Origin: Macrostomum lignano
Taxonomy: Eukaryota
DNA length: 36,976 nucleotides
Direction: 5' to 3'
NCBI GenBank assembly: GCA_002269645.1
Contig: NIVC01000979.1
Coordinates: 1 to 36,976, forward strand
In this document: positions 1,261 to 30,318 of the stretch, in pieces
Layout: every line of letters begins with the position of its first letter
How positions within the stretch are numbered: position 1 is the first letter of the stretch
Translations under genes and position numbers: made by a program
The notes under the pieces: generated by a model
Told to the model about the DNA's origin: nothing
The model's database searches: none
The model's input: only the letters and a program-made list of their open reading frames with translations

Positions 1261-3391
1261 CATGGCCGCAGGCGTAGACAACGCAGCGGTGGTATGCCCG
1301 TTCATCACTGCCAAGTACCAGGAGTCCAAAAACTGCAAGAAGGAGCTCAACTATGCCGACGCTCGCGACGTCCCAATCGTGCCGGCCATGGCCGAGCTGA
1401 AGTTCAAGGCCACCGGCTGGTTGGGCATCATCACGGCCGGACTGCTCTGGATGGACTTCCGACGTGATGAGGCCTTCGACAACAGCATTGTGTCGCTTAC
1501 TAAAGAAATCATCCACGCTGCCGGAGACAAACTCAAAATTGGCCAGGCCAGTCCATCCCAGCCTCCGGCGCTCAAGGTGGATCTGAAGAAGAAACCCGGC
1601 CGAGCTTTCAGGCACAGCCAGTTGGGAAAATTTCTGGCCGAATCGGGTGAGTCAGAGTTAGGGTGTTAATATTGTTGTAGCATTTATTCAATTAGTTTAT
1701 AGGCCTCGCTTTCAACTTGGCGCTAGTGCTTCATCGAATTCGCTGGCCCTAATGTCCGAATTAGTATCTCTAACTGGCGTCAATTGAACCCTGATTGGAG
1801 TCTCTAGCACCCTAATTGGCATGCCCTAATGCCCTAATTGACAAACCTTAATACCCTAATTGGCAAACTTAAATTGTCCTTTGTTTGCAATCCCTAATAC
1901 CCTAATACCCTAATCGGCAACCCTAACTCCCTAATCGGTTCAAGTTTATGTTCATGTACATGTAAATGACATGATAACGCGCTCGAAGGCATTCCAGATC
2001 GTCGGTACATTAAAAAGCTACCAAAGAAATGATGACATTTGCACAGCCTTGCATATCAATAAGACGCAAACACCTCTATCATTCCCCCATGCGCAGGCGA
2101 GGTGAAGCACCACCAGGCTAGCGGCAGCCGGAGCACCCTGGTGCTGCGAGACACGCCGAGGACACCAGCTACTGGGAGGAGAGCAAGCTGGAGCCCAAGT
2201 CTGAGATCCACTACTTCCGCAACTACCAAACTAAGCAGTACCTCGGTGAGTGAGGCTGAATATGACTCTGCATCACAGTCCCAATCATTATGCGCTCTGA
2301 TAATCATTATCTCCCTCACTCTGATAATCATTATCTCCCTCACTCTGATAATCATTATCTCCCTCACTCTGATAATCATTATCTCCCTCACTCTGATAAT
2401 CAATATCTCCCTCACTCTGATAATCATTATCTCCCTCACTCTGATAATCATTATCTCCCCCACTCTGATAATCAATATCTCCCTCACTCTGATAATCATT
2501 ATCTCCCTCACTCTGATAATCAATATCTCCCTCACTCTGATAATCATTATCTCCCTCACTCTGATAATCATTATCTCCCTCACTCTGATAATCATTATCT
2601 CCCTCACTCTGATAATCATTATCTCCCTCACTCTGATAATCATTATCTCCCTCACTCTGATAATCATTATCTCCCCCACTCTGATAATCAATATCTCCCT
2701 CACTCTGATAATCATTATCTCCCTCACTCTGATAATCATTATCTCCCTCACTCTGATAATCATTATCTCCCTCACTCTGATAATCATTATCTCCCTCACT
2801 CTGATAATAATTATCTCCCCATTTTGATAATCATTATCTCCCTCACTCTGATAATCATTATCTCCCTCACTCTGATAATCATTATCTCCCTCACTCTGAT
2901 AATCATTATCTCCCTCACTCTGATAATCATTATCTCCCTCACTCTGATAATCAATATCTCCCTCACTCTGATAATCATTATCTCCCTCACTCTGATAATC
3001 ATTATCTCCCTCACTCTGATAATCATTATCTCCCTCACTCTGATAATCATTATCTCCCTCACTCTGATAATCATTATCTCCCCCACTCTGATAATCATTA
3101 TCTCCCTCACTCTGATAATCATTATCTCCCTCACTCTGATAATCAATATCTCCCTCACTCTGATAATCATTATCTCCCCCAGGCTACGACCCGAACGGTG
3201 ACTACATCTACACGAAGGGCCAGCATTACGGCGCCGAAGAGTGGCTGCTGATCTCGGACGAGGAGTCCACGGACGGCCGCAGGGCGGTGGTGATTTTTGC
3301 CAAGTTCGGCCAGCGCTACCTGGCTATTAGAAATGGCAAGCTGACCGGCGTGGCCAACAAAGGGCCCGACTGCGTTTGGTACCTGGATTAA
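1261..3391 (+). CDS. TIR-domain (TIR_2/SARM-like invertebrate type) + C-terminal beta-trefoil-like protein, 5'-partial; one apparent 1-nt deletion in the middle exon
   Basis: Exons 1261-1646 (ccacag|c ... TCGG|gtgagt), 2097-2245 (gcgcag| ... CTCG|gtgag) and 3183-3391 (ccccag| ... GAT TAA). The first exon encodes MAAGVDNAAVVCPFITAKYQESKNCKKELNYA...GWLGIITAGLLWMDF, typical of TIR_2. The C-terminus has three repeats (AFRHSQLGKFLA..YW / YFRNYQTKQYLG..EW / IFAKFGQRYLA..VW). The middle exon is 149 nt between two phase-1 introns, so about 1 nt is missing near 2155-2158 (RDTP|EDTSYW). The 5' exon(s) are not identified in the window. Confidence 0.8.
2295..3181. repeat. 24-bp minisatellite (CTCTGATAATCATTATCTCCCTCA), ~37 copies, filling an intron up to its acceptor
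   Basis: Gives 8-aa repeat ORFs. The unit contains the palindrome GATAAT-C-ATTATC. The last unit ends ...CCCCCA and is followed by the G of the acceptor AG. Confidence 0.97.
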
Positions 3392-5894: not shown

Positions 5895-7829
5895 TCAAAA
5901 GTCGTTCTTGCCGGCAAACACGGGATTAGTGACGGTGGTGTTGGGATCTCGATAGACCGGATTCTCCCCGGCGCCCCAGGCGGAGTTCTGAGTCTGACTC
6001 TTGAATTTGGCGAACTCTCGCCGGTCGGATATCGTGATCAGAGCCTTCCAAATCAGCAGGATGATGATGCCGACAATTACCACGGCGGCTACTACGATGA
6101 GTACGAGAATGAGCGGAGACACCCGGTCGCGGCACTGCTTCTCCTCCTGGATGAACAGCGTCATGTTGCGAATAGACCTGCTGCCAATGCTGCCGTCCCC
6201 GATGATGTAGCCGTACAAGAGGCTGCACTCGTTGGCCATGTTCAGCACGCAGGTGCTCTTGTCGTTGATCACCTCGCTTTGGGGAGTCAACTGGATCCTA
6301 ATTAGGGATGAGCAGGCATGAGGCTGTTAATATTAGCTTCTAATCTCACCAATATTTTCTCTAGTCTCACAACTTTTCTCTAGTCTCCAATCTCTCCTCA
6401 CATCTTCTATCATAACACACTTGATGTACTTTAGTCTTGACCAAGATATGATATAATCACATCTAGTTTCTCTTTTATCTGATTTAGATAATCTCTAATC
6501 TCATCTACTCGTAGATACTCTCTAATATCATTTTCTAGATTTTCTCTAATCTCATTTCCTAGATCCTAGACTCTAATCTTAGATTCTCTCCAATCTTATC
6601 TCTTAGATTCTCTCTAATCCCATTTTCTAGATTATCTCTAATCTCATTTCCTGGATTCTCTCTAACCTTATCTCCTAATTTTCTCTAATCTCCTTTTCTA
6701 GATTTTCTCTAATCTCATTTTCTAAATTATCTCTAATATCATTTCCTGGATTCTCTCTAAATCTTATCTCCTAGATTTCTCTAATCTCATTTCTTGATTC
6801 TCCCTCATCTTATCTCTTAGATTCTCTCAAATCTTATTTCCTAAATTCTCTAGTCTCATCTCCTAGTCTCTCTAATCTTATAGATTGTCTAATCTAATCC
6901 GATACCATTCTCAAAAATATTTCTACTAATCCAATCCCAATCCCTGTCATCTCATCTGCTAGATTCTCTCTAATCTCATATTTTAGATTCCGCACTAATT
7001 TTTCAAAAAGCTTAGAACGAACAGACGCCGGAGACACCCACTTGCTAGCGTCAATCCAGACGCCCTCCTCAACCAGGCTGCAGTTGCACTGGGTCTGCCG
7101 GTCCTCGGGCGCCAGTTTCCGATTATTGAACACGCACTCAACGCATCGGCGGAGGCCTTCGTCGTTGCACAGGCTGCCAGTTGATCCAGCCTTGGTGTCG
7201 CAGTGCGGATCAGACGACCACAGGGCTTCGCAGACGCATCGGCCGCAGATGCAGGTGCCGTGATTTGAGCACTGCATATCTTTGTATTGCTCTTTCTTAG
7301 AATGACAGTCCGGTTTGAGCTTGTTAGCGTCTGAGCATGAGCAGTCTTTCTCAGAGTAGCCAGGCTTGCAAATGCACGTCCTTTTGCCGTCGCATTCGCC
7401 TCGACTGGGCCCGCCGCAGGGCTCCTTGGTGTCCCAGGAGTCCGGGCAGGACAGCTTGTCCAGCTCGCACAGTTTGCCATAGTAGTTGTCCTTGTAGCAC
7501 ACGCACTTGTTGCACACGCACCGGCCGTTCTTGCTGCAAATATTCGACACGTCGCCGGAGTGGCACTGGTCGACCTGGGACCCGGTCTGGGCGTCGCATT
7601 GGCACGAGTCGCCGCTGTAGTTGCCATGGCAACTGCATACTCCGCACTCCAGGTGGCTGGGTTGGAAAGAAAAAACATTGATAATTCATTTTAAGATTTA
7701 CCGAGTTTAGGGGTCGGCCAACTTCGGCCACATGCGGGCTACCAAGCCTCTCTATCTTGCTCTCCATCAATCCGGCCTGCTCAAGGTTTGCGACTCTTCT
7801 CAGCTCCTTTCTCTCTAATCTACTCTTTA

Positions 7830-7872
<43 letters not shown>

Positions 7873-10800
7873 CTCCCTCTCTCCTCTCCTCTCTCTTCTC
7901 CCTCTCCGCTCCCTTCTCTTCTCCTCTCTCTCTCTCCTCTCTCTTCTCCCTCTCTCTTCTCTCCTCTCTCCCTTCTCTTCTCCCTCTCTCTCCCACTCTC
8001 TTATCTCCCTTCTCTTCTCCCTCTCTCTCTCCCTTCTCTTCTCCCTCTCTCTTCTCCCTCTCTCCGCTCCCTCTCTCTCTCCCTCTCTTCTCCCTCTCTC
8101 CGCTCCCTTCTCTTTTCCCACTCTTTATCTCCCTTCTCTTCTCCCTCTCTCATCTCCCTTCTCTTCTCCCTCTCTCTTCTCCCTCTCTCCTCTCCCTTCT
8201 CTTCTCCCTCTCTCTTCTCCCTCTCTCCGCTCCCTTCTCTTCTCCCTCTCTCTTCTCCCTCTCTCCGCTCCCTTCTCTTCTCCCTCTCTCTTCTCCCTCT
8301 CTCCTCTCCCTTCTCTTCTCCCTCTCTCTTCTCCCTCTCTCCGCTCCCTTCTCTTCTCCCTCTCTCTTCTCCCTCTCTCCGCTCCCTTCTCTTCTCCCTC
8401 TCTCTTCTCCCTCTCTCCTCTCCCTTCTCTTCTCCCTCTCTCTTCTCCCTCTCTCCGCTCCCTTCTCTTCTCCCTCTCTTTCTCCTCTCTCCGCTCCCTT
8501 CTCTTTTCCCACTCTTTATCTCCCTTCTCTTCTCCCTCTCTCATCTCCCTTCTCTTCTCCCTCTCTCATCTCCCTTCTCTTCTCCCTCTCTCACCTCCCT
8601 TCTCTTGTAAGGTCATCCAAAAAGTGCTAGCGACTCCGAGAATTACGTACAGCCGAGTACAGCGCTGGCTAACTAAAGCTCTGCGGGATGACGCAATCAA
8701 AACAGTAGAACTCACCCGACATTCTGACACTTCGGCACCTTCTGCAGAGGATTAGCTTTGGCCTCGCACTCCGGACAATTGCACAGCGATTTAATTCGAA
8801 CTTCCATTCGATCGTCAGAAGTTGTTGACGCGAAATGTACAATCTCTTCTGGCCGGGGCAGGCACTTGGTGAGGGTGACGGTGGCCCTGTAGGACACGGT
8901 AGCTCCTAGCGGCACTCGGTGGCACCTGTTGCCCAATTTGAAATCGGTCTCGCCGGGGCATCGAACCTCGGACGTGATGTTCAACCATAGGCCAGGATCG
9001 TTAGCCCGAATCTCAACAGTCTCAGCAATGGATCGATAATTCTTTTTAATCAATTCCAATACGTTATCGTTAGTGACCAGATCGACTTCAGTCACCACTG
9101 GCAGGGCGTGCTTCAGTTGCATGTACAGAGGCGTGTAGCTGTCAGATTTCAAGGCGAATATTACTGACACCTTGGCGTCGGAGAGCACCTTGGCAACTTG
9201 CCCAATTGATGGATAGTCAAATCTGAAGTTTTATCAATTAATTATTGTCAGTAAAGTATCGGTAAAGAAACCCCCCCCCTGACAATTTTTTGCTGGAGCA
9301 ACGCAGGCCCACGAAATTGAAGAACACGGGCCAACTTTTTGTTGCGCACCTTCTCAAACAAGAATCAAGTCGCCAGCCCTCTGGACCAACGAGATATTCG
9401 ACGATTCTGCCGGAAGGTCGGATTTTCCCATAAGCGCTAGTGTATTCAGTACACCACTATGCGTCAATCAGCACTGCGTCTCAGTGCAGCCTTGCCAAGT
9501 CTCCAAATTTTATCAGCAACTTGAACACATGTGTCTGCATTAGCACTGACTTCGTTGGTCACTGGCCTTCACCCAGATGGAGCTTCTGGACCTTCAACAG
9601 GTGGCACCAGGTGACTATGGACACCCTGATACGAATTTCTCTAGTTTCGCCGATCAAGCCTCGACAGTGGAAAACCTCAACTGCTAGGTATCCTCAGCTG
9701 GTCTCTCGAGCATTCCGTCATCACCCGACGCCGTCGGTACTTTCAACAGATGACACCAGGTGACTATGGACATCATTTTGCGAAAATGTCAGATTTTTCT
9801 TTTCAAGCTTCAATAATAGGCAAGCCTCAACCGCCGGAAATCTTCAGCTAGTATCTCAAGCATTCAGTCTTCACCCGGACGCCGTCATCCCCCTCTTGGT
9901 AGTTCTACTGTTAACCATTTTCAAGTAGTTTTTTTCTATAAGTAACCTAAACTAAAGATATACAGGAGTCACAGCAGAAATATCACGACAGGGTGAACTA
10001 ACCACTAGCTCCTCACTCGCTCACTCACTTCTCACTTCCCACTCACTCACTCCTTACTCACTCACTTCTCACTCCTCACTCACTCACTTCTCACTCCTCA
10101 CTCCTCACTCATTCACTTCTCACTCCTCACTCATTAACTTCTCACTCATTCACTTCTCACTCACTCACTTCTCAGTCCTCACTCACTCACTTCTCACTCA
10201 CTCACTTCTCATTCCTCACTCACTCACTTCTCACTCACTCACTTCTCATTCCTCACTCACTCACTTCTCACTCCTCACTCACTTCTCACTCCTCACTCAC
10301 TCACTTCTCACTCACTCACTTCTCATTCCTCACTCACTCACTTCTCACTCCTCACTCCTCACTCATTCACTTCTCACTCATTCACTTCTCACTCCTCACT
10401 CACTCACTTCTTACTCCTCACTCACTCACTCCTCACTCATTCACTTCTCACTCCTCACTCATTAACTTCTCACTCATTCACTTCTCACTTCTCACTCACT
10501 CACTTCTCACTCCTCACTCACTCACTTCTCACTCACTCACTTCTCACTCCTCACTCACTCACTTCTCACTCACTCACTCACTTCTCACTCCTCACTCACT
10601 CATTTCTCACTCACTCACTTCTCATTCCTCACTCACTCACTTCTCACTCACTCACTTCTCACTCCTCACTCACTCACTTCTCACTCACTCACTTCTCACT
10701 CACTCACTTCTCACTCATTCACTTCTCACTCCTCACTCATTCACTTCTCACTCCTCACTCATTCACTTCTCACTCACTCACTTCTCACCCCTCACTCATT

Positions 10801-13727
10801 CACTTCTCACCCCTCACTCATTCACTTCTCACTCCTCACTCATTCACTTCTCACTCCTTACTCATTCACTACTTGCTCCTCACTCATTCACTCTCACTCC
10901 TCACTCATTCACTACTTGCTCCTCACTCATTCACTTATCACTCCTCACTCATTCACTCCTCAACTCATTCACACCTCTCACAATCGCTCCTCATTCACTC
11001 ACGCCTCGCTCAGTTGAGTATTAACTAACCGTTGCCAAGTTACAAAAAACATCTCTAACGCACCTGGTGGCATTGACGTACTCCAGACTGCCAGTAACAT
11101 TCAGTTTATTCCTACCCGTCTCCAGGTGACACTGCGACTCGGGAAACGGTTCGATAATGCCGCCAAACCGGCCGTCGCCAGCCATGTGAAAGCCGCCATC
11201 AATAGCCAGCAGGACCACTTTGCGAGAATTCGATCGCCAACCAATTTGTGAGCGGCAGATCACCGCCTGCAGTAGGGCGTCTAGGGAGCCTTCGGGGGCG
11301 TCCAGGTTGGCCGAGATGGTCTTGGCCGCTGTGACCTAATGTGGGTATGAAAAGGCACAAATGAAAGTTAAATTAGTCAGACAACGTAGTTTCAAATGAA
11401 GGGTACAAATGAAGGTTAAAGAGTCGGGAAGGGCAGCACAGGTACAAATGAAGGTTAAAGAGTCGGGCAAAGGTAGCACCGGTACAAATAAGGTTAAAGA
11501 GTCGGGCAAAGGTAGCACCGGTACAAATAAGGTTAAAGAGTCGGGCAAAGGTAGCACCGGTACAAATAAGGTTAAAGAGTCGGGCAAAGGTAGCACCGGT
11601 ACAAATAAGGTTAAAGAGTCGGGCAAAGGTAGCACCGGTACAAATGAAGGTTAAAGAGTCAGAGCGCGTCGTAATTAGGGTAAGTAGAGTACAAATAAAG
11701 GTCAAATTATCGAGCGACGGTACAAATGAAAGTTAAAAGCCTGGGAGGGTAGCATAGCATTTATATAGCTCATCCAAAGGTAATAACGCTACATATCGGT
11801 ATATAATAAGGTGAAGATTTACTTCTTTAAGCTCGACGACATTCTGGCTCAAATCCATAGCGTGAATATAGCTGAAGGTGTCGATGCACCGTTCGCCGAA
11901 GCCCAAAGAGTCGCAGGGCGCAGCAGACGGATTCGGCTGCACATAGGGGAACACTGGCTTGTCGACAAAGAATCCGACCCCGATGCGCCAGTTGCGAGTC
12001 AGCTCGCCCAGAGTCTGCTGGATCTTCTCGGACATGTTGGCTACGGACTGTAGAAGTCTCGCATACTGTGACTCTTGTCGGACAGGATGTACATGTCCAC
12101 CGGGTAGTTTTCAGCTTGCTTAAATTCGAATTCCAGTTGGATTGAATGATGATCGGGCCCATACGCTCACGTTTTGAGGCGATTTGGTTGCTATCGCTCA
12201 GCGGGTTGTCGAGCATGATCTGGCTGGCACAGGGGTGGCCGAGCTTCTGGTCCTATCTAGAGTTCTAGTACTATAAACGGATGGGAAGACGGCTTATGTT
12301 GTTATGGGAAACATACTGAATGGGAAGTTACGGATATGGTTATGGGAACATAACTGAATGAATATAGCTACATAAATGCAATCCCGAGAGATTGTTCTAG
12401 TACAATAAATAAGTGAGACTTTATTTAAGATTATTATTTAGATTATTTATTTACTTTCTCACGATATTATAGTGCATGATGGAAGAACATTTGCTATTGC
12501 CATTGAACAGTTGCCTTCTGTAAGTGGGGCTGTGGGATGCAGTGTGGGGGCTCAGTCAGACATGCTCTGATGATGTACTCCGTGCCTTGGAGCCCCAGAT
12601 TAATGTGGCTCAGAATCGAAGACGGCGACTTTGGTGCGAGAGTGCGACGCGACGGGTTGTGACCCACTATATAGGGCTGGGTGTGACCGGATTAAGGAGC
12701 CACGTGTGACAGGCTGTGACCCATTATTAAGGGCCAGGTGTGACAGATTGTGACTCACTAAAGGAGCCAGGAGTGAAAAGTTGTGACTCACCATGAGGAG
12801 CCAGGCGGAATAGTTGTGATCCAGGGATCCAGGACCCAGGGTTGAGAGGTTGTGATCAACTTTTAAGGGCCAGGTGTGACCGGGTTGTGATCGACTATTA
12901 AGGGCCAGGTGTGACCCACTATAAAAAGCTAGATGTGACAGGTTGTGACTCAATAAAGAGCCAGATTTGACAGGTTGTGACCCAATAAGGACCCGGATGT
13001 GACAGGTTGTAACCCAATAAGGAGCCAGATGTGACAGGTTGTGACTCAATAAAGAGCCAGATGTGACAGGTTGTGACCCATCATAAAGAGCCAGATGTGA
13101 CAGGTTGTGAAGAGCCAGATGTGACAGGTTGTGACCCACTATAAATAGCCAGGTGTGACAGGTTGTGACTCAATACGAGCCAGATGTGACAGGTTGTGAC
13201 CCACTATAAATAGCCAGGTGTGACAGGTTGTGACCCACTATAAAGACTAAAGAGCCAGATGTGACAGGTTGTGACTCAATAAGGAGCCAGATGTGACAGA
13301 TTGTGACTCAATAAAGAGCCAGATGTGACAGGTTGTGGTCCTATATAGAGCCGGATGTGATTGGGTTGCAAGTCTGCATGAAGACCATTGATCCGTATCC
13401 ATCTATAATTGACCAATAAAGACAGTCTAAGGCTACCAAGATTGAGTAAAAGTACATTTCTTCCCTCACCTCAGCGCGACTAACTGGCGACTCCATGAGA
13501 ATGCAGCCGCGGTCCCTAAGCTCGGCCTTAGTGCCGCACCTGTGCTGAGGCCCAATGCGACTGTCATCAAATGATTCGTCTGTGCACCAGGCGCAGGAGC
13601 TGTGCAATTTGATGCAGGCCGAACAGCTGGTTGGCGGAATGCCCACAGAGCAGGGCGAGATGGAGGACACTATAGTGACAGTGGCAGAGCATAGCAGTGC
13701 CAGAAATAGTGATTTGGGAAGTAGCAT
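5895..13727 (-). CDS. ITGB: Integrin beta subunit (6 exons); exon 2 frameshifted as assembled
   Basis: Exons in transcript order: 13727-13470 (an in-frame ATG at 13763 is also possible), 12219-11823, 11335-11064, 9222-8716, 7656-7042, 6297-5895, all GT-AG. The protein has a signal peptide, a PSI domain (CSACIKLHSSCAWC), a betaI domain with MIDAS DKSHS, NLDAPEG and IDGGFHMAGDG, FDYPSIGQV, a hybrid domain, Cys-rich I-EGF repeats, a TM helix, and the tail KALITISDRREFAKF...NPVY...NPVF. Exon 2 is 397 nt between two phase-0 introns, and the homologous text is split across three frames. Confidence 0.95.
6340..6990. repeat. Degenerate CT/A-rich tandem repeat (..CTCTCTAATCTCATTTCCTAGATT..) in integrin intron 5
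   Basis: Recurrent ctctaatct / tagatt motifs. Confidence 0.8.
7830..8605. repeat. Polypyrimidine (CT-rich) compound microsatellite in integrin intron 4
   Basis: Almost pure C/T on the + strand, with higher-order units. It produces the spurious LS-rich and ER-rich ORFs. Confidence 0.95.
10007..10990. repeat. (CTCA)n-derived array (ACTCACTTCTC/ACTCCTC) in integrin intron 3
   Basis: About 1 kb of ctca/ctt/ctc units. It reads GTGAG(T/A) on the integrin sense strand. Confidence 0.95.
11395..11660. repeat. 39-bp minisatellite (GGTACAAATAAGGTTAAAGAGTCGGGCAAAGGTAGCACC), ~6 copies plus degenerate flanks, in integrin intron 2
   Basis: Gives 13-aa repeat ORFs (KVKESGKGSTGTN). Confidence 0.93.
12650..13365. 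repeat. ~32-bp minisatellite (GAGCCAGATGTGACAGGTTGTGAC..AATAAA) in integrin intron 1
   Basis: The repeat is visible directly and degenerates toward the left end. Confidence 0.9.
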
Positions 13728-14049
13728 GATTGTTTTTAGTAGCTGGAAAAGTTTATGAATCATTTTTAAATTAGTTTTTTCTACTTTTATTTTACAAAAC
13801 GTTTGGGAGATGGAATTTTTTTGTTTTTGTTGTCAAATTTTTTTTTATTATTTTTAGTAATTTTTATTTAAATACATTTTTTATTTTCTTAATAATTTGA
13901 TTAAGTCAGGAACATTTAAAACATGGAAACTTCGAACTCACAACAAATTTTTCACACACTCAATTTAAAAATCCCCGACGCCACTCTTCTATAGTCCTAA
14001 AAACAAAATTACCACTATAAAAATTATATACAGTGATAATAATATAGAA

Positions 14050-18694: not shown

Positions 18695-21600
18695 ATGGCT
18701 GTCTCATTGCCAGTAACCTTCGAGCCTCAATCAGCCATGAGTCTCAGCAGCTTGGTAACATCCATCGAATATAAAACTGGCGCTCTCTACGATGGTGACG
18801 TTAGCGATCAGGCCAAGCAGGGAACCGGGGTTTTCACTTGGCCTAATGGTGACACGTACTCCGGCGAGTTTTCCAATGACAAGAGAAATGGCAAAGGTAT
18901 TCTGGTATTCTGGGTCGGAATGTTTGATTGTTATTTCATTGTTTTGACTGATTGTTAAAACGTAAACAACTTCAGGTGAACAAGTTTGGTACGATGGAGA
19001 CCGCTACAATGGCGAATATGTCGACGACATGAGACACGGATTCGGCGAATACACCTGGAATAACGGAGAGGTAAGAATTAAAACTGACAGTGCGAGATAA
19101 TTACTCAATTAAAAAATATAGACTACTAAATCGGATTGACAGCAAAAGAAGAAAAAAGCTTTTTGCTCCCAGCCTTGCACACTAGTCACAGGGACCTCCA
19201 ATCTGCACCTCTGTAGCTGGCGCCCCTCTGTAGCTGGCATCCCCCTCTGTAGCTGGTACCATTTAGAACATTTAGAACATTCATATTTAGCATATCGTAT
19301 TTAGTGCAGTCTTTCGCGTAGAAAAGATCGATGGGCAATTCTCGTCCACCGAAATTTAGAAAATTGTTTAAACTTATAATTTTTATCTCTATGCAGCGCT
19401 ACATCGGTCAGTTCTACAAAGACCACCGGCACGGGCCGGGTCAGTACACCTGGGCAGATGGCAGTAGTTTCGTCGGTACCTACTACATGGATCGCAAAGA
19501 AGGCTACGGAACGTTTTTCTACGCCAATGGCGACAAATTCGATGGTCTCTACCAAGCTGACGAGCGCGAAGGCCCCGGCGTGATAACTTATGCCGATGGT
19601 AGCCAGGACGTCGGACTGTGGCATCGAGAGCGACTATCCAGACTGCTGACTGAGGTTCCTGACACGTTCAGCCTGGGCAACCACCCAGAGCTCGACTACG
19701 ATCCCAGCCGTGGCAAAGTTCAACTGCCTGCCGAGGGTCGACCGGATCCGCAGCTCGACGCCTTCCTAGAGGCGATCGTCAATCCGCCACCCGAGTGGAC
19801 GTACGACCCGGCCGCTGCGCAGCGCGTCAAGTCACGTCTGGACGGCGAAGTGCTCACTGGCAGCCGACCGGACAGCGCTGCTTTTAACAGAAAGGACTCC
19901 GACGTGAACTTTCGACGCTCGGCTGGTCTGCGGGAAGACGCCGAGCACACGGATGAGGCTGACGCGGCCGGGAAGGAGACTCCGGCGGCGGAAACTGAGC
20001 AGCAGGATGCCTCATCTTTGCCACCGTCGAGCAATCAGTCTCCAACGCATCAGCAGCATCAACACAGGGCGTCGCCGAAAAAGGCAGGCGGTAGCAGCCC
20101 TAGCAGGTGAGGAGGATGCTGATAAATTTGGTTTGATTTGGTTTGGTTTTGTTTGATAGAATCACTCGTGAGGCTTCTGACTTGATTTTCAAGCAAGGGA
20201 GAAGCTAACGAGATCGAAGAAATATTATCTTTTTGTGTCCTCCGCCACAGGAGTCCGAAGCGCGGCTCGCCCAGTCGGAGGCCGCAGCCGACCGTTAAGC
20301 CGGCGAAGCGAGGCGGCCGCTCCACTGTTGAAACGCCCAACGAGTCGTCGAACAGCCCAACGGCCGACGCGGAAGCCGCAGCCAAGAAGTCTCAAACAGT
20401 GGACGCTTGGAATCCTACACCGGCCAGCGTGGCGATGCAACTCCACGTGATTCGGTTTCGACAGTTGCAGTCACGAGCCGGATTCGATGTGGATGCAGTT
20501 CTTCGAGCCGATCGGAGTGGCTTTTGCCAACAGGTACAAAATGTTTTTAATAGGCAAACTTTTAAACGTTGACCTACTTGATTTATGGATAAAGGCTATG
20601 CCAACCGCAGCCGAAAGTAAAACTGAAAAACTGCAAACTGCACTGTAGTCGATAATTTGCTTGAAAAGGTGGATAGAAACCCTGAGACATTTCATCCAGA
20701 TCCCTCTTAGAATCCCAGGAGAATTTTCTATTGCAGTTGGTCTGCCTCAGCTCCACTCTAGCGCATTCATTTATAAGTAGCTTGCACACATTCGACGCAT
20801 CTCCAGACTTTGATTCTGTGCGCGGCCTCATTCGTTTGGGGCTTGTGCGCAAAAATTCGCCGGCGGGTGGTCGTGCGTCCCTACTTACAGTACCCACCCA
20901 CGTATAGGTGCACAGCGGAACAGACGGAATTGCGTCAGCGCTGGTTGTAGGACAATGTCACTGAAAGCGTTGCACCAGGGTGCATAAAACCCTGAATATT
21001 TATTCTTGGCATAGTTTAAGAAACTTACTTTGCGGAGCCTCAGAGAATTCCATTGCATAGCTTATATAATTCGCAACACCAGGGCCCATTGGAGCGTCGC
21101 TCGGTAGAGCTGATCGAAGCCGCCAAGTCTGGCGACCTCGCTGCGGTGCGCGGCTTATTGTCCAGCGGCGACGTCGATCCCAATGTGTCTGACAGTCTGG
21201 GCAAAACTCCACTTCTCTGCGCCAGCGTCAACTGGCACCGACAGGTGGTCGATTACCTGCTGGACGCCGGTGCGGACGTCAATCGGCTTAGCGACGAAGG
21301 CGTCTCCTGTTTAGCTGCTTGCTTCGTTCACTACTATCCGAGCGACAAGTTTCAGCGGAACATTGCTGAGAGTCCGGTAAGAAGCATGTTTTCGTGCAAG
21401 TTATGTCTATAGTCATGGGAATGTCGAGAAATCAACAATTGCTTTCCTGGAAACTAACTATACCGCTAACTTGAACTTAAATTTCTGCCAAACGAGCGAA
21501 TTTCGTTGCATTTTTTCGAGTTTTTTAACACCAAATTGGCAACATTTCCTTTTGAAATAAAAAAGACCAGTTTGTTTTTCCGGAGATTTCCAAGTCGGAA

Positions 21601-24600
21601 GATTTGGAGCGGAGATGTTGGCAATATCTTGCTTAAAAACGGAAAACGTCTTATCTAGCTAATTTACTCGGACTTTTTAGCGAAAACTACGATTTTCAAG
21701 CTCAATTCATGTCCGGGGGCACGTCTATCGCGTACAAGAATATGCTGTTTATAGAAATTCATCCCTATATATGTTGCTACGTTGAAAAAATGACAATATT
21801 TCTGTTTCCCAAAACAATTCGTTTAGGTGAAGCGCCTCACTGAAGAAGAGCAGAAAGCCGCTAGGAAGGCAGCGGCTAAAGCCGCCGCCGCTGCCGCCGC
21901 TGCCGCCTCGACTGCCGCAGCTCATCGCAAGCCGGGCGCTCTGCCGCCAGTTGCTGAAGGAAAACCTGGCGAAGCCGCCGGACGACCGGGAGCCTCATCC
22001 GACCGACTAACCGACCCCGTTGTTGGCCGCGGTGGCCGATTTGCCGGGACGCTAACCGGGGCACGACGACCGGACTTTGTGGCAGCAGCCGCGACCCGGC
22101 CCGGCCGGTTCCAGCGCAGCTGGTCGGTCAGCGACGACGACGACGATGACGATGGAGATTCAAATTCTGGCGCCCGCGGTGGCCAACCGAAGCAGGACGA
22201 TGCCGTTGAGTTGGCCAGCGCCGTCAGCGTTGGTTCAGCTTCGCCCAGACCGTCGGAAGATTTTGAAAGCACCGATTCGCTGGCTAATTACAAAATCACC
22301 GTGCCCGAGGAGCTGGTCAGGCGGGCCGCCACGGCGCTGAGCAGCAATCAGCTGGTGGCCAGTCGCGTCGCGTCATCCATGGTGACCCGCACGGCACCGC
22401 AGCCGCCTGGCGGGGGAGATGAAAATTTGGAATCCGGCGGACAGGAGGGCAGGACAAGAGAGATGGCTGTTCATATGGCTAAGTAAGTTTATTAACAGTA
22501 GCATGTCGTGCCTTTTTATGAGATATGAAATTGCAGCAGAAATTCCATCTACATATAGAACGGGTAGTAATAGAAAATTGTGACCATTAACAAATGTAAC
22601 CTGCTCCTTGTGAAGACCTAATAGGCGTCTCAATGATTATTTTAAAAATGGTCAAATATGGACAATTCAATTTTGTCACCTTTTGCATCAGTCGGTGATT
22701 TGATGATCGACTTAGTTGACGGCGGTCAAAGAGCTTCGAAATGTGTATGCATATGATTGGAAACCACTTAAACACTGCAGGCACAAGCTGATGTCAGACA
22801 CCGTCCACCTGCTCCTTGAACGCGGCGCCGACCCGAACGCATCTGCCGTCCCCTTTCCCGCCCTGTTCTTCGCGGTGAAGTCCGGCGACGTTGACATGAC
22901 TCGCCAATTGCTGCTTCGCGGAGCCGACGTCCGTGCTCGTCTGGAAGCGTCGCGCGGCGGCCTAACGGCGCTGCACATCGCCGTCGCGCTGCCGGGCGAG
23001 CCGAGCGTCACCATCACGGAGCTGCTGCTGCACAGCCTGGCGTATCCTGACGCCCGAGCTGTGCCGGACGATTCCTTTCTCGATCGAACTATGGAAGAGG
23101 ATTGGTCGCGCGACGAGATCACGGACGAGCAGAAAATGCTTCTTGGCGGTAGGACTCCGCTGCAGATTGCCGCTTCGAGAGAGGATGAGCACCGGGTGAG
23201 ACTGGGGCCTCGGATTGGTAAATTTTTATCATAATTGCTATTGAAGATTGTTACAGGGGAAGGGTTAGCTCACTGAGGGTATGCATGGATCGGGATTATC
23301 TGCTTGCCTCCTCGGCTGCGGATGGATCGTCGCCTCGATTTGCGTTGGTCAGCTCAAAACTTTACTTGACTAAAACATAAAACGTGAATCAATAAAAACT
23401 GTTCCTATTTTCTTGCCCGAGGAACCAACGAAACCAAAATTGTTAAGGTAAAATTCAAATGATTTCATTGATAAATCAAAATTAAGTAAGTGGCCTAGTC
23501 ATCGTATTATTCTCTACTTCATATTATGTCACTCATTTGTCATCACCGACCTGCATCCAAGCCGTGCACCATTCAGTATTCAACGTCAATGCATAACAGA
23601 AACACAAACGCCCCAATGCGTTCTTCAGATCACATGTTTTATTGACTTGTAATAACCTCAGCGTATCAACAAAGTATCTGCGTCGAGCCCAAACTCTTAC
23701 CAAATAATTCTCTGAATTTTCAGCGAGCCCACCAAATTGTTCGCCTATTGCTGGAACACAAGGCCAATCCCAATCTGCTTTGCAACGGAAATAATGCTCT
23801 GACGCTGGCTGTTCAAAGCGGAAATGACGCAGTGAGTTCCTGTTGGTTTTAGCGCTATTGATCAACAAAGTAAATCATGAATATTTAAATCTTAAATTGT
23901 TAAGAAAGCAATCAAAGAAACTTACAAGATGCGTAAAGTTTTAGCACCGCACAACGTTGAGTAGGACGACAATTACTCCGTCATGAAAACTGCCTAGAGA
24001 GCATCCGTGTCCTTGTCAATTTAAAAATTCATAGTCTATTTCACTCTGAACTGAACACTTCGTTTCCAGCACACTTGTTTTTTGAATTAGTAATGATCCC
24101 CACATGTGATTCCCAGCTGCACTGACCTACGGGTTGAGCTAATTATACTTGTCTATTTACTAATTAAATCATGCAACGAATTTATCCGATAAACAAACCG
24201 ATAGTCACTGACCTGATGCATAAATCTGTAGCAACTCCGTCCCAAGCATGGCAGCGTCAGCACGATTCGGGAGCTTCTGGACTTTAATCGACGCTTAGCC
24301 ATGCTGGAGCCTCAAACTCTGATGCTCACGGCAGCAGAGGGAAAAGCTCAGCAAAGTGCAACTTACAGTCCAGACTGCAAGATGGCTCGGTCGATGACCA
24401 TGTTTCGTCGAGAACCGATCCAGCAGATCTGATTGCTAATTTCATCGATAAGATGGACACGTCCGAGATGGACAGTGTTCGTTAAAAGATCACTCGCTAC
24501 TTTATGAATAATTGCCAACGACACCATTAAACTGCACAATATTTATTATTCGTGTCTACTATATCACCCGCGTATATCAAACAATAGCTGCAAATATGTT

Positions 24601-27600
24601 CGGGTATCAGGATATCTCGAGACACTCTATGTTATTACCAAGGTCTTAATTATTAATTACACAAGACAAAACCTAAAGTTACACACTCTTCAATTTACCG
24701 GTTTTTGGTCTTCAAACACAATTTATATTACTTCGGATTCACGTGCTACTCGAATTTAAATGAATTCACAATAATCACTTTAAAGCTCTATTCCATCACG
24801 TGCATGACAACACGGTACACTAATTTTGATAAATAAATTTCACCAAACTTTTGCTAAACTTCAGGCCATAGACGAGCTGCTAGCCCACAATGCCAACGTC
24901 AACTTGGCTTTGTCTCACGGTGTCGGCAGTGCCCTCTGCGCAGCCTCCAACATCGCCTACGAGGATAAACGCCAACTTAGAGGCCGCCTGGATCTAGTGA
25001 GCGCTTGGGATACATTGAAAACCTTCACTGCTACTCCTGAAATACCTAACTAAACACTGTTTAGCCCCATTTTAGAATCTAACCATTAGTTTCTAACACC
25101 CATCAACTTCAGATCGACAAGCTCATGGACGCCGGCGCGGACATACTGCAGCCAATAGCCATTGGTGTCAAACGACAGCTTGGCACGGCTGTAGACTACG
25201 GATGGCAGTCCTACTACCTGGACAAGCGCGTAGCCTTCTCTCCCTACCATGCTCTCAACCCGGTTGAACGTCAAGCCTTCCAAGATCGCAACGTCGTGCT
25301 GAAGCATCTCAGCAATCGACTTCGCGAGAAGGCGGTAGAACGAGAGCGGCGCCGGCTTGAAGAAGAAGAAGCTGACGGCGTTGTTAGTGAGTTCAATCGT
25401 CAGTTTTGTTTATTTGTTTGCTCGGAAATTTCAGAGTTCCAGACTTCTATCTAGGTCGGACACCAGCATGGGCTATAGAAGCACGCTGTGGCTTGTGGGC
25501 ATAATAAAATTCTGAAAGTTCTAGGAAATTCTAGGAAACTACCACAGACAGTCTCGATTAATAGATTAATACGCTCGTAGAGCTTTCATCAAACCTGCAA
25601 AGGCAAACTCATTTTTGGGAATAAGTCCTCTTACTTTTATCCAACCCTTCATTAAACTATATATGCAGCAAGCATGTACTATTCAATTTTTAGATCGCGA
25701 GAAAATCAAGGGTGAAGCAGAATTATGTTTTCTCCTTGTTTACATATAAATGCTATGGTTTTCGTAGATACACTGTACTACATCTTATTTCGTTGAGCTA
25801 TGAGTTGAGCAAACTATTTTGGTTATTCTGATTTCTGTTAAAAGGGTCTTTCATCTTCATAGTCACGTATTTCTCTCAGTATTTAACTTTACTTTTCATC
25901 CAAGATATTTTTGTTTGAATTTGAATTGAATTTAAATATTATAGATTCTCTAAGCGCGCCAATTTGAATTGATCAATTTAAAGTAAGCGGACTAAAAAAA
26001 ACAAATATTCTCTTTGACAACTTTCAAGGCCGAGGGCCGAGCGAGAATTTTGTGTACACCGGTGCGGGCGCTTCAATGCCGGGCACGCGCGACTCCGGTG
26101 ACGAGTTTCTTCGTCAGCAGGAAGTCATCGTCCGGTGAGTTCTTCTCCTTCCCGCTACTATAAGTAGGATAATTCAAACATTCGGAAAACTAGTTTGGAT
26201 TGTCAAGCGATTCACACCCTTGAAGACTAACCCCAAGTCACAGAGAGTGTACATGCTGGACGATTAGAAAGTCTAGGCCGCTGTACACTTGTGTGAGCAT
26301 CTGTGCATGCTCAGGTAACAGCGGACTGCGTGATTCATAGGAGCTACGTTTGCCAACACAATAACTGAAAAACCGAAAATTATTATTTAATTTCAGATTT
26401 AAAACCAGAAAAGAAAGGTTTGTATTATTAGTTAGTGCAATTTAGATTTTCTACTTATAATTTGTTATCTAAACTGTTTCAGCTTCAGTTTAAAAGCATC
26501 ATTGTCAGTGTCTTCTTTTAGAAGCGCGGAGCGCTATTTCTTGAGTAGCTAGACTAGACATAATCTATCAGTATAACTGCATCAATTCTTGCCAGAGTAG
26601 TATGATGCTTTTGTTTGTTTCAGAAATTGTAGCTTAGGCGAATATTTTTTATGTAAAAAATGGGGTTTGACTGTTTGACTCTTATTTTAGTTCTTGGCTC
26701 AGTTTTTGCTGTGTGGAAGCACTCCTTATATTTGTCCTTGTTCATTAAAGATTATTTGAGAGGGCTTGTTTAATGGACCATCGAGGTTCTTGAGAAATTT
26801 TTAAGCCCAGTTTTTCACGCTGATGTCAGACTGTCTCTCTCTCTTCATCGGCTCTGATGTCAGACTGTCTCTCTCTCTTCATCGGCTCTGATGTCAGACT
26901 GTCTCTCTCTCTCTTCATCGGTTCTGATGTCAGACTGTCTCTCTCTCTCTTCATCGGTTCTGATGTCAGACTGTCTCTCTCTCTCTTCATCGGTTCTGAT
27001 GTCAGACTATCGGTTCTGATGTCAGACTGTCTCTCTCTCTCTTCATCGGTTCTGATGTCAGACTGTCTCTCTCTCTCTTCATCGGTTCTGATGTCAGACT
27101 GTCTCTCTCTCTCTTCATCGGTTCTGATGTCAGACTTCAGACTGTCTCTCTCTCTTCATTGGTTCTGATGTCAGACTGTCTCTCTCTCTTCATTGGTTCT
27201 GATGTCAGACTGTCTCTCTCTCTTCATTGGTTCTGATGTCAGACTGTCTCTCTCTCTTCATCGGTTCTGATGTCAGACTTCAGACTGTCTCTCTCTCTTC
27301 ATCGGTTCTGATGTCAGACTGTCTCTCTTTCTTCATTGGCGCTGATGTCAGACTGTCTCTCTCTTTCTTCATTGGCTCTGATGTCAGAATGTCTCTCTCT
27401 TTCTTCATTGGCTCTGATGTCAGACTGTCTCTCTCTTTCTTCATTGGCTCTGATGTCAGACTGTCTCTCTTTATTCATTGGCTCTGATGTCAGAATGTCT
27501 CTCTCTCTTCATTGGTTCTGATGTCAGAATGTCTCTCTTTCTTCATTGGTTCTGATGTCAGACTGTCTCTCTCTTTCTTCATTGGCTCTGATGTCAGACT

Positions 27601-30318
27601 GTCTCTCTTTATTCATTGGCTCTGATGTCAGAATGTCTCTCTCTCTTCATTGGTTCTGATGTCAGAATGTCTCTCTCTCTTCATTGGTTCTGATGTCAGA
27701 ATGTCTCTCTTTCTTCATTGGTTCTGATGTCAGACTGTCTCTCTCTTTCTTCATTGGCTCTGATGTCAGAATGTCTCTCTCTTTCTTCATTGGCTCTGAT
27801 GTCAGACTTCAGACTGTCTCTCTCTCTTCATTGGTTCTGATGTCAGACTTCAGACTGTCTTTCTCTTTCCATCGGTTCTGATATTAGACTTTCCATTTTT
27901 TCCATTGTCTTTCCATTAGACTTTCCATAATCTTCATCTCCTTGAATACATTAACCATGAGTATCTGGCTGGAAAGACACGTCACCATCAAGAGAATCCC
28001 TCCACGACGCAGGCGTCCAATCTTCAAGTACTGCTACGACTGCGGCCGATCAGTGGGCGTCCGGTTGACTCCGTGCACTCGCTGCAAAGAGGTCTACTTC
28101 TGCGGCAAGGCCTGCAAAGTGCGCGCCTGGAACGACCGGCACAAAGACGAATGCCAACGTGTTGGCGGCGGCGCCGGGGCCGCAGGTCGGAAAACCGACG
28201 CCAGTCGAATCGACAGTCCGACTCCGGCTACTGACGCGGACAGAGGCTTGAGCAAGCCGCGAGTTCGCGACCTGAGCAAACACCTGGCCGAACTGCGGAT
28301 GCGCAATCCGATGAAAGGTCGCAGCAAGAGCGCCGTAGGAGCTGGCGTTGGAGGTGATTTCTTGCTTCTGCAAATCACTTTTGATAATGGGGATGTCAAC
28401 TTAAGCAAAATGGAATGGAGCCAAAAGTTACTATCCGAATCAAAGTGACTATCAAGCTAGAAGTTCTGTAGCCATTGAAAGTACAAACCTTCTCCAAAGG
28501 AGGGGCCTGCTGAGATGAGATGTCTCATTACCTGTGGTATTGCATCATTCAGTTGGATATTCAATTTGATCTTTGAGGCATTGGGATAGACACAATTATC
28601 CAAATGCCTCAAAGATCAAATTGAATATCCAACTATATTGGGATAATTGAATCCCAATTATCCCAATTATCCCAATACAGGCACATGGACAGACACCAGG
28701 ACACCATTTAGACAGGCACTTGGACAGACACCAGGACACCAATTAGACAGGCACTTGGACAGACACCAGGACACCAATTAGACAGACACTTGGACAGACA
28801 CCAGGACACCAATTAGACAGACACCAGGACACCAATTAGACAGGCACTTGGACAGACACCAGGACACCAATTAGACAGACACTTGGACAGACACCAGGAC
28901 ACCAATTAGACAGACACTTATACAGACACCAAGACACCAATTAGACAGACACCAGGACACCAATTAGACAGACACCAGCATACCAATTCGACAGGCACTT
29001 GGACAGACACCAGGATACCAATTAGACAGGCACTTGGACAGACACCAGGACACCAATTAGACAGACACCAGGACACCAATTAGACAGGCACTTGGACAGA
29101 CACCAGGACACCAATTAGACAGACACTTGGACAGACACCAGGACACCAATTAGACAAGCACTTGGACAGACACCAGGACACCAATTAGACAGACACCAGC
29201 ATACCAATTAGACAGGCACTTGGACAGACACCAGGATACCAATTAGACAGGCACTTGGACAGACACCAGGACACCAATTAGACAGACACCAGGACACCAA
29301 TTAGACAGGCACTTGGACAGACACCAGGACACCAATTAGACAGGCACTTGGACAGACACCAGGACACCAATTAGACAGACACTTGGACAGACACCAGGAC
29401 ACCAATTAGACAGGCACTTGGACAGACACCAGGACACCAATTAGACAAGCACTTGGACAGACACCAGGACACCAATTAGACAGACACTTATACAGACACC
29501 AAGACACCAATTAGACAGACACCAGGACACCAATTAGACAGACACCAGCATACCAATTAGACAGGCACTTGGACAGACACCAGGACACCAATTAGACAGA
29601 CACTTGGACAGACACCAGGACACCAATTAGACAGACACTTATACAGACACCAAGACACCAATTAGACAGACACCAGGACACCAATTAGACAGACACCAGC
29701 ATACCAATTAGACAGGCACTTGGACAGACACCAGGATACCAATTAGACAGGCACTTGGACAGACACCAGGACACCAATTAGACAGACACTTGGACAGACA
29801 CACTAAGATGCACTAAGAATACCAAATCTTACGCACAAACCAAAGAGTAGATAGCCAAGTCAACTAAGCATTTGGTAAACTTTGCTTTAGCTTTGTAAGT
29901 CTCTTTGATGCTTTGTGCTAAGTAAGTCTTAGCCTTTCAATAGCTAGCTGAGCTTGACCACTCCAACTAAATGTAGTCCTTAACTACGCCTTCAGGTGCG
30001 AGAGACTTCTCACCTACGCACGGCGGCGGTAAGCTGCCACCGATCAAGGGCCAACACCAGCAGCAGCTCCTGATGCAGCAGCAGCAACAGCGCGCCCTAC
30101 TCAACAGAAAGCTTCAACAGCAAGGTGGAAAAGCTGGCAATGGCACCGCAGCTGGCGGTTCGTCCCTTCCTGAGGGCGTCTCCTACAAGTACAGCAACGG
30201 GCGCTACATCCTGGTTGATTCGCTTGGCAGACCTCTTAAAGGTCCGTACTATCAGCAATTAATGATGACGGGCATCGGCAGCGATGGCAGCCTGCCAGAC
30301 AATTATAGCTTCGAGTGA
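18695..30318 (+). CDS. ANKMY1: Ankyrin repeat and MYND domain-containing protein 1 (MORN repeats + ankyrin repeats + MYND zinc finger), ~1312 aa
   Basis: 13 exons: 18695-18896, 18976-19070, 19397-20106, 20251-20533, 21083-21376, 21827-22482, 22781-23195, 23724-23831, 24865-24996, 25113-25386, 26029-26134, 28013-28353, 29996-30318. They total 3939 nt with all phases compatible. Kozak-like gcaccATGg start. Six full MORN repeats (YxGxFxxDxRxGxG), ankyrin repeats ([22 protein letters not shown]), MYND CYDC..CTRC..CGKAC..HKDEC. The 3' boundary of exon 12 (28353) is the least certain junction. Confidence 0.92.
26821..27890. repeat. ~34-bp compound minisatellite (TCTGATGTCAGACTG(TC)nTTCAT[C/T]GG[T/C]) in ANKMY1 intron 11
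   Basis: The repeat is visible directly. It has an internal TCTGA-TG-TCAGA palindrome and a variable (CT)n tract. Confidence 0.95.
28551..28634. other. Near-perfect 38-bp-stem hairpin (8-nt loop) in ANKMY1 intron 12
   Basis: AGTTGGATATTCAATTTGATCTTTGAGGCATTGGGATA / GACACAAT / TATCCAAATGCCTCAAAGATCAAATTGAATATCCAACT, one mismatch. Confidence 0.9.
28680..29800. repeat. Minisatellite with alternating 35-bp and 23-bp units (GGACAGACACCAGGACACCAATTAGACAGGCACTT) in ANKMY1 intron 12
   Basis: The repeat is visible directly, with higher-order re-use of variant blocks (e.g. acttatacagacaccaagac). Confidence 0.95.

Follow-up and report, generated by a model that had tools for sequence, protein, structure and literature searches.

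In bacteria and plants, TIR enzymes that consume nicotinamide adenine dinucleotide (NAD+) bring about cell death or immune signalling; to our knowledge, SARM1 is the only established enzyme of this kind in animals. Among the bacterial systems, Cat1, in which a TIR is combined with a CARF domain, forms filaments once its ligand is bound, and NAD+ cleavage follows (PMC12162218), and bacterial TIR-STING likewise proceeds from ligand to filaments to NAD+ cleavage (PMC13142454). In the 2026 TIR atlas, several eukaryotic TIR clades are listed as wholly uncharacterised (PMC13142454). Here, we analyse a stretch of 36,976 nucleotides from the flatworm Macrostomum lignano (assembly GCA_002269645.1, contig NIVC01000979.1, positions 1 to 36,976 of the forward strand; in the following, the window), which carries near its beginning a gene for a TIR domain fused to a beta-trefoil. 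An earlier note on this DNA, made from the letters alone, had proposed that the fusion is a sensor-NADase immune protein. We find that the locus is the 3' three-quarters of an M. lignano gene for a 292-residue cytosolic protein with two domains, and that this gene belongs to an old, vertically inherited family. The protein is best read as a TIR enzyme that would be gated by a ligand of the trefoil; we infer this mechanism, and put its probability at roughly 0.45.

Gene structure and domains of the TIR-trefoil protein

The 3' end of the gene is on the + strand, and its last three coding exons are inside the window. The features of the locus are as follows; tandem repeats were called with Tandem Repeats Finder (TRF).

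183-1252: 21-bp minisatellite of about 51 copies, which fills the window's share of the intron upstream of exon A
1261-1646, + strand: exon A; acceptor AG at 1259-1260, donor GT at 1647-1648; codons 46-173 of the 292-residue protein, flanked by the third base of codon 45 and the first base of codon 174; TIR helix alphaB to alphaE at about 1262-1531, Pro/Lys linker at about 1532-1597, start of the trefoil from about 1598
1343-1345, + strand: codon GAG of Glu73, the putative catalytic glutamate, in the motif S-K-N-C-K-K-E-L
1647-2096, + strand: intron, GT...AG; degenerate CCCTAA(T)-like short repeats at 1809-1938
2097-2245, + strand: exon B, with a 1-bp deletion; acceptor AG at 2095-2096, donor GT at 2246-2247; codons 175-223, flanked by the second and third bases of codon 174 and the first base of codon 224; strands 2-4 of trefoil repeat 1 and the beginning of repeat 2
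2156-2160, + strand: frameshift site; CCGAG in the window, CCNGAG (Pro-Glu) required by the intact protein
2246-3182, + strand: intron, nearly all of it a 24-bp minisatellite (2295-3178, about 37 copies)
3183-3391, + strand: exon C; acceptor AG at 3181-3182, stop codon TAA at 3389-3391; codons 225-292 and stop, preceded by the second and third bases of codon 224; trefoil repeats 2 and 3

After splicing and restoration of one base in exon B, the three exons give a product of 247 residues that is identical (100% over 100% of its length) to a 292-residue M. lignano protein catalogued as UniRef A0A1I8GCP2, 'TIR domain-containing protein' (P0001). By tblastn, the translation of exon A matches this protein at 99-100% and exon C matches its residues 224-292 at 100%. 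The reconstruction in the earlier note, which had spliced the same parts and restored one base to obtain a protein running from TIR to trefoil, is thus borne out, and the strings on which that note had relied (SKNCKKELNYA, GWLGIITAGLLWMDF and the Pro/Lys linker SPSQPPALKVDLKKKPG) are all found in the product. With residues 1-46 as query, tblastn gave no match in the window, and the remaining 5' exon lies beyond its 5' end. As read from full-length P0001, this exon supplies only residues 1-45 (MSHVMLSYQWDKQ...GNINDS), which run from strand betaA through helix alphaA to the BB loop of the same TIR. The missing N-terminus, which had been thought to be able to bring in further domains, adds none. 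The concern that the downstream exons might belong to another transcript can also be set aside: more than 40 homologues of about 290 residues are colinear with the reconstructed protein, many of them on contigs the size of an mRNA, and the exon set is further backed by intron positions in common with Nematostella and Megalops.

The protein consists of the TIR (residues 1-135), the short Pro/Lys linker (136-157) and the trefoil (158-292). An AlphaFold2 model of full-length P0001, built on an alignment of 45 sequences, has a mean predicted local distance difference test score (pLDDT) of 91.3 and a predicted template modelling score (pTM) of 0.88. DSSP assigns to this model the strands and helices of the TIR up to residue 135, a linker of 20 residues and 12 strands between residues 159 and 291, and the high pTM hints that the TIR and the trefoil may pack against each other in a fixed arrangement. 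Neither a signal peptide nor a transmembrane segment is present in the 292-residue protein.

For the TIR, Pfam places residues 1-73 of the window fragment in TIR_2 (PF13676, STIR clan; E 1.6e-7, profile positions 44-115) with 32.2 bits, above the gathering cut-off of 28 bits, in agreement with the TIR_2 assignment of the earlier note. Full-length relatives reach up to 72 bits and 7.7e-20 against TIR_2 (P0059 has 72 bits over profile positions 1-120). A model of the TIR on its own (AlphaFold2, pLDDT 89.8) has a flavodoxin-like alpha/beta fold with alternating strands and helices from betaA to alphaE, and Foldseek finds for it 114 matches in the PDB at E<=1e-3; all 50 of the 50 matches listed are TIR domains. 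Pfam gives no match in the 292-residue protein to a death domain, a leucine-rich repeat or immunoglobulin ectodomain, ARM or SAM. With none of their accessory domains present, the architecture is indeed unlike that of TLR, MyD88 and SARM1 proteins, as had been noticed from the letters.

The C-terminal domain models as a beta-trefoil, and the AlphaFold2 model and Foldseek agree on this, so the identification made in the earlier note stands. The fold is built of four strands in each of three repeats, and the tryptophan that closes each repeat is invariant (W200, W244 and W289), as the note had seen. The motif which it had given for the repeats, F-x4-5-(G/K)-x-(F/Y)-L, describes repeats 1 and 2 with a spacing of five (FRHSQLGKFL and FRNYQTKQYL) and does not fit repeat 3 (FAKFGQRYL). 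Against the PDB, the C-terminal 135 residues give Foldseek matches at E 1e-7 to 1e-5. The closest are Symfoil and FGF1, with a target template modelling score (TMt) of up to 0.85 and a root-mean-square deviation (rmsd) of about 2 Å, followed by the mussel lectin SeviL (0.79) and by BEL (0.72), all at E of about 1e-7; actinohivin, HA33 and the Polyporus lectin are matched as well. Against viral structures, Foldseek returns generic FGF, fascin-like and ricin trefoils together with one giant-virus TIR.

At the level of sequence, these trefoils are barely detectable. Pfam has no match in the C-terminal 135 residues of the window protein. Among 22 members of the family, FGF is found below threshold in six (best E 0.009) and Fascin below threshold in one (4e-5), and neither is found in the window protein; RicinB_lectin_2 appears in three of the 22 (best E 0.04), again below threshold only. 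Two matches of the trefoil profile, P0070 and P0133, also stay below its cut-off of 25.6 bits, with 19.5 and 22.4 bits, respectively. The repeats have no Gln at the place it takes in the ricin QxW motif and read S-Y-W, E-E-W and C-V-W. A trefoil profile searched against PDB sequences finds SeviL only, at a marginal E of 0.064, while the single window protein finds chance matches to antibodies and SeviL at E 0.27. When the trefoil profile was used in a HMMER scan of 1.84 billion representative proteins, only 77 matches were obtained, most of them fragments the size of an exon, and nearly all full-length matches have TIR_2 in front of the trefoil. These full-length matches are members of the family, the variants P0070 and P0101, a second protein of Pigoraptor (P0060) and a distant fusion with Ifi-6-16 (P0133). 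We conclude that the trefoil is a private domain of this TIR family and has no model in domain databases.

Several other observations concern these searches and the DNA of the locus. P0090 (744 residues, with PALP repeats) and P0131 are also among the matches to the trefoil profile and were rejected as chance matches driven by repeats, and the same probably holds for P0128 and P0132. The variants P0070 and P0101 come from metagenome or transcriptome sources; P0070 (344 residues) has an N-terminal extension with a hydrophobic stretch resembling a transmembrane segment ahead of TIR_2 and trefoil, and P0101 (486 residues) has a long Lys/Ser-rich insertion within the trefoil. Introns of the TIR-trefoil gene are almost wholly minisatellite (the 21-mer in 51 and the 24-mer in 37 copies), and the short repeats of the middle intron (1809-1938) resemble a telomere motif. 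TRF lists 44 rows across the whole window, and long minisatellites are a general trait of this genome region.

Spread, age and conservation of the family

A search of 5.8 billion proteins returned 58 relatives, most of them about 290 residues long and colinear with the query along its entire length (100%), at 55-68% identity. A full TIR-trefoil protein is already present in a unicellular holozoan, Pigoraptor chileana (P0031, from EukProt; 58% identical to the flatworm protein). Among animals, members are found in the ctenophore Bolinopsis, in cnidarians (Nematostella, Exaiptasia, Porites, Orbicella, Oculina, Desmophyllum, Rhopilema and Sanderia), in the acoels Convolutriloba and Symsagittifera (about 60% identity), in the annelids Owenia and Dimorphilus, in the nemertean Tubulanus and, at 38-49% identity, in teleosts (Megalops, Conger, Sardina, blennies and a wrasse). 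No arthropod, nematode, mollusc, echinoderm or tetrapod is among the matches that carry an organism name, and many matches bear none. More than one near-full-length paralogue in a single species was seen in Pigoraptor only, which has two.

Three intron positions, IND(S/A)|MA, ESG|(E/Q)VK and YLG|(Y/F)DP, are common to the flatworm, Nematostella (L001) and Megalops (L002), and a fourth (DFR|) is common to Nematostella and Megalops. Because of these shared positions and of the spread from Pigoraptor to teleosts, we conclude from sequence comparison that the TIR-trefoil gene is old, predates animals and has been inherited vertically, with many losses in individual lineages. Since intron positions are conserved across phyla, the gene is not a recent transfer; a recent horizontal transfer of the whole gene from bacteria was considered and rejected on these grounds and because there is no identified bacterial match to the trefoil. 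The second Pigoraptor chileana protein, P0060, carries a divergent copy of the trefoil after an unrelated N-terminus of about 110 residues with no detectable TIR. Because Pigoraptor has both P0031 and P0060, we suggest that the trefoil module itself predates animals and can be recombined.

Within the protein, the trefoil is conserved more than the TIR, with a mean column identity of 70% vs 61%, and repeat 2 (NYxTNGYLGYDPNGDYIYTKxQHYGAEEW) hardly varies between Pigoraptor and flatworm, its invariant residues including D226, Y231, Y233, K235 and E242. All members are labelled 'uncharacterized' or 'TIR domain-containing' in databases, and we found no description of the family in the literature on a TIR combined with a trefoil. 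The family is thus catalogued in databases, yet functionally and architecturally undescribed. Because no domain database has a model of the trefoil, surveys based on Pfam would file these proteins as 'TIR-only' (PMC5094078).

Proposed activity and trigger of the protein, and state of the window copy

Several features of the TIR would suit an enzyme. Glu73, which lies in helix alphaC (residues 68-79 in the model), is invariant in 45 of 45 homologues and, in alignments of the family profile with PDB sequences, falls on SARM1 E642 and on the Glu of Cat1 SDWCWDEL; the putative catalytic glutamate pointed out in the earlier note is therefore intact. D33, G40 and I42, all encoded in the exon outside the window, align with D594, G601 and F603 of the SARM1 BB loop and are invariant or at least 90% conserved; in enzymatic TIRs, the Asp and the Gly-x-hydrophobic of this loop are required for the composite active site. 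Conservation likewise reaches at least 90% at Y8, W10, D33, G40, W108 and D110, and F111 and R112 do not vary. Among PDB sequences, the family profile finds Cat1 best (7.5e-6, over Cat1 residues 5-97), then the SARM1 TIR (6.5e-4), then Hydra TRR-2 (2e-3), and after it plant TIRs and C. elegans TIR-1. The best structural match to SARM1 by Foldseek has a query template modelling score (TMq) of 0.76, a TMt of 0.80 and an rmsd of 2.2.

Based on these data, we suggest the following model for the protein. The TIR would be an enzyme of the SARM1, Cat1 or plant kind, in which the invariant Glu73 would cleave NAD+ or make an NAD-derived signal, and its activity would start once TIRs self-associate. The C-terminal trefoil would be the regulatory or sensor module, and it would hold the TIR inactive until ligand is bound. 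A sensor role for the trefoil is suggested by the order of the domains, in which the TIR comes first and the putative ligand-binding domain second, as in Cat1 and TIR-STING, by the hint of a fixed TIR-trefoil packing in the pTM of the model, and by the fact that the trefoil is almost never found without the TIR. As no other part of the protein is as conserved as the trefoil, the ligand would more probably be a universally conserved endogenous molecule (a sugar, a sugar-phosphate, a nucleotide-like metabolite or a conserved host protein) rather than a variable pathogen glycan. Acoels have no TLR, MyD88 or IRAK (bioRxiv 10.1101/2025.06.17.660074), and TLR-type TIRs are absent in flatworms (PMC7075850). 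That the gene has been kept in acoels and in a flatworm speaks against a role in the canonical Toll pathway. Judged from sequence and models, the sensor-NADase idea of the earlier note seems a reasonable mechanism, and an enzymatic function of the TIR is plausible, at close to even odds.

Several points weigh against a ligand-gated enzyme. An intact Glu73 does not by itself show NADase activity, as many TLR TIRs retain the glutamate without being known as NADases; in other words, this residue does not discriminate. The tryptophan at position -4 from the glutamate in SARM1 (W638) and in Cat1 (SDWCWDE) is Asn69 here, in a family motif that reads S-K/R-N/S-C-K-K-E and in which Asn69 is at least 90% conserved and replaced by Ser in fish. 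Likewise, SARM1 R569/R570 correspond to Q9/W10 in the TIR-trefoil family. The Foldseek neighbours of the TIR mix enzymatic TIRs (RPS4, SARM1, SPARTA, RUN1 and AbTir) with scaffold TIRs at overlapping scores (Hydra TRR-2 at 9e-7, MyD88 at 2.6e-5, MAL at 4e-5, and TLR1), and Pfam TIR_2 does not define a TIR subtype (PMC13142454). Finally, the copy in the window is frameshifted and is, on its face, not an intact gene; it may be dead if the frameshift is real.

The structural neighbours and the substituted tryptophan are also what speaks for a non-enzymatic adaptor or scaffold, in which the TIR would make homotypic contacts only, as in MyD88, MAL or Hydra TRR-like proteins, and the trefoil would act as a tether to a membrane lipid or glycolipid, to the cytoskeleton in the manner of fascin, or to a partner protein. 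TRR-2 is close to the TIR by sequence profile as well as by structure, the Fascin match at 4e-5 in one member would suit a cytoskeletal tether, very strong conservation would suit several fixed partners, and earlier cnidarian surveys would count such proteins as 'TIR-only' scaffold candidates (PMC5094078). However, the gene is kept at about 60% identity in acoels, which lack TLR, MyD88 and IRAK, and is kept in a flatworm; the glutamate and the BB-loop glycine are at least 90% conserved in about 45 sequences from Pigoraptor to fish; and the top sequence-profile matches are enzymatic TIRs. A scaffold is a serious competitor that we nevertheless consider rather unlikely. The same TIR evidence that supports a ligand-gated enzyme also fits a more particular version of it along the lines of the earlier note, a cytosolic pattern-recognition sensor of the lectin type. 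By binding glycans of microbes or viruses, its trefoil would oligomerise an NADase TIR that serves as immune effector. Lectins (SeviL, BEL, actinohivin, the Polyporus lectin and HA33) are among the closest natural trefoils, SeviL is the sole match of the trefoil profile among PDB sequences, and there are weak matches to RicinB_lectin_2. By contrast, no lectin family is matched at threshold and the ricin Gln is absent before each closing Trp (YW, EW, VW). The protein has no signal peptide and resides in the cytosol, where few glycans are present, and a trefoil that is more conserved than the TIR, in a protein 55-68% identical between Pigoraptor or cnidarians and flatworm and with at most two near-full-length paralogues per species (in Pigoraptor), gives no hint of the diversification expected of pathogen-facing receptors. 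A glycan-binding immune sensor fits these data poorly; it is the weakest part of the earlier interpretation, and we regard it as improbable.

Whichever of these functions the family has, the window copy could be a genuine pseudogene, with a real 1-bp deletion at 2158/2159 and with other M. lignano copies providing the function. In the assembled sequence, the reading frame is lost in exon B, and premature stops follow downstream. The frame switches between CCG (2156-2158) and AG (2159-2160), and tblastn with P0001 is split accordingly into residues 173-194 in frame 2 (2093-2158) and residues 195-224 in frame 1 (2158-2247). The splice phases agree only after one base is added; insertion at CCG/AG yields ...LVLRDTPEDTSYW..., a restoration that was checked base by base, and the missing base, between 2157 and 2159, is most simply one G of a GG pair. 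Rescue of the frame through alternative splicing was rejected, as the break is inside the conserved block RDxPEDTSYW, which is uninterrupted within a single exon in Nematostella and Megalops, and the only acceptor AG that looks in frame (2120-2121) would have the wrong phase. In support of a pseudogene, the UniRef cluster of P0001 has three M. lignano sequences, and more copies may exist; moreover, the same gene is represented by a second M. lignano model, P0050, that contains several frameshifts. On the other side, the remaining 246 codons encode exactly the residues of P0001, every splice site is intact, and the loss of one base from a GG pair resembles the 1-bp indels in other coding units of the window, as expected of a long-read assembly error. 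Those units (33672-34355, 35330-35721 and 36283-36864, in a tandem array) differ by 1-bp indels, two of three of which are in runs of C, and two of which are about 30 nucleotides apart and compensate each other. Because the rest of the gene is identical to P0001, because 1-bp indels occur elsewhere in the window and because P0050 is itself multiply frameshifted, the frameshift in exon B is quite probably an assembly indel rather than a real, very recent null allele, and we consider a pseudogene unlikely.

Of the indels in the tandem units, one adds a T near 36432, and the other two each remove a C, near 36460 and near 35546. P0050 (UniRef A0A1I8F900, M. lignano, 195 residues) carries the label 'EamA domain-containing protein' but does not represent an EamA transporter. 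Its garbled sequence results from translating a copy of the TIR-trefoil gene through several frameshifts and opens with 16 residues of a wrong-frame reading of exon A. The label is a mis-annotation that arose from indels in the source assembly.

Returning to the ligand-gated enzyme, we speculate that the family could be a second animal TIR-enzyme family, independent of SARM1 and descended from unicellular ancestors, in which the trefoil, by binding a small endogenous molecule that is itself conserved (a signal of the nucleotide or sugar-phosphate type), would gate TIR assembly and NAD+ cleavage or signal synthesis. It would then be a eukaryotic counterpart of TIR-STING and Cat1. In this specific form the idea is a long shot; if true, such a family would have been overlooked because standard model organisms do not have the gene and because databases are blind to the trefoil.

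Neighbouring genes and comparison with known systems

Three other loci were recognised in the window, all downstream of the TIR-trefoil gene:

5895-13763, - strand: integrin beta subunit gene
19331-28448, + strand: gene with MORN repeats, ankyrin repeats and a C-terminal zf-MYND
33084-36864: tandem Cys-rich array with + strand units of the form CPxxxW...CYLLVKG...DEAxxDC

In the integrin beta gene, PSI is at 13341-13763, the end of the VWA at 8712-9188, EGF and integrin-EGF repeats at 6894-7550 and the cytoplasmic tail with NPxY-type motifs at 5895-6290; its introns are rich in CT-type minisatellites. The combination of MORN, ankyrin and MYND presumably makes the second gene similar in architecture to ANKMY1. 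Pfam had no match in the two tandem Cys-rich units that were scanned. The three units listed above for their indels share 87-95% DNA identity, and the indels are either homopolymer assembly errors or signs of decaying copies. No functional link of the integrin, MORN-ankyrin-MYND or Cys-rich loci to the TIR-trefoil gene was seen in the window.

If the TIR is enzymatic, the family would represent a second ancient animal TIR-enzyme pathway, with a conserved trigger, that has been kept where Toll signalling was lost. The gene occurs in tractable organisms, namely Nematostella, Exaiptasia and Macrostomum.

Among the described systems, SARM1 and its C. elegans counterpart TIR-1 share with the TIR-trefoil protein a TIR_2-type domain and a glutamate at the position of E642, and both are strongly conserved cytosolic animal proteins. 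However, SARM1 has an ARM domain, two SAM domains and a C-terminal TIR, while the TIR-trefoil protein has only an N-terminal TIR and a trefoil in 292 residues, with the trefoil in place of ARM as the presumed regulator. Moreover, sequence identity to SARM1 is only about 17-19%, and Asn replaces W638 and Q9/W10 replace R569/R570. In domain order, the protein resembles Cat1, TIR-STING and TIR-SAVED, which have the TIR at the N-terminus and the ligand-binding domain at the C-terminus, a role that is putative for the trefoil. Their sensors are CARF, STING and SAVED, respectively, whereas here the putative sensor is a beta-trefoil. In addition, unlike Cat1 and TIR-STING, the TIR-trefoil protein is encoded by a eukaryotic gene that bears introns at positions conserved across animal phyla.

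With Hydra TRR-2, MyD88 and MAL/TIRAP, the protein has the TIR fold in common (TMt 0.79-0.81 for TRR-2 and about 0.72-0.73 for MyD88 and MAL). By contrast, the TIR-trefoil family has no transmembrane segment, death domain or phosphatidylinositol bisphosphate (PIP2)-binding motif, and it persists in lineages that lack the Toll pathway. In its C-terminal half, it resembles FGF1 and Symfoil, SeviL, R-type-like lectins and fascin in the fold of 12 strands in three repeats with a Trp closing each repeat. It differs from them in that none of the Pfam trefoil families reaches its threshold and QxW is without its Gln; the domain forms a narrow family of its own that is almost always fused to TIR_2. 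Lastly, the protein resembles the 'TIR-only' or novel TIR_2 proteins of cnidarian surveys (PMC5094078) and the uncharacterised clades of the TIR atlas (PMC13142454), in which Pfam detects TIR_2 alone. In the TIR-trefoil protein, however, the C-terminal half is a folded and conserved trefoil that domain databases miss. Thus, the 'TIR-only' counts in surveys of invertebrate immune genes conceal a real two-domain architecture.

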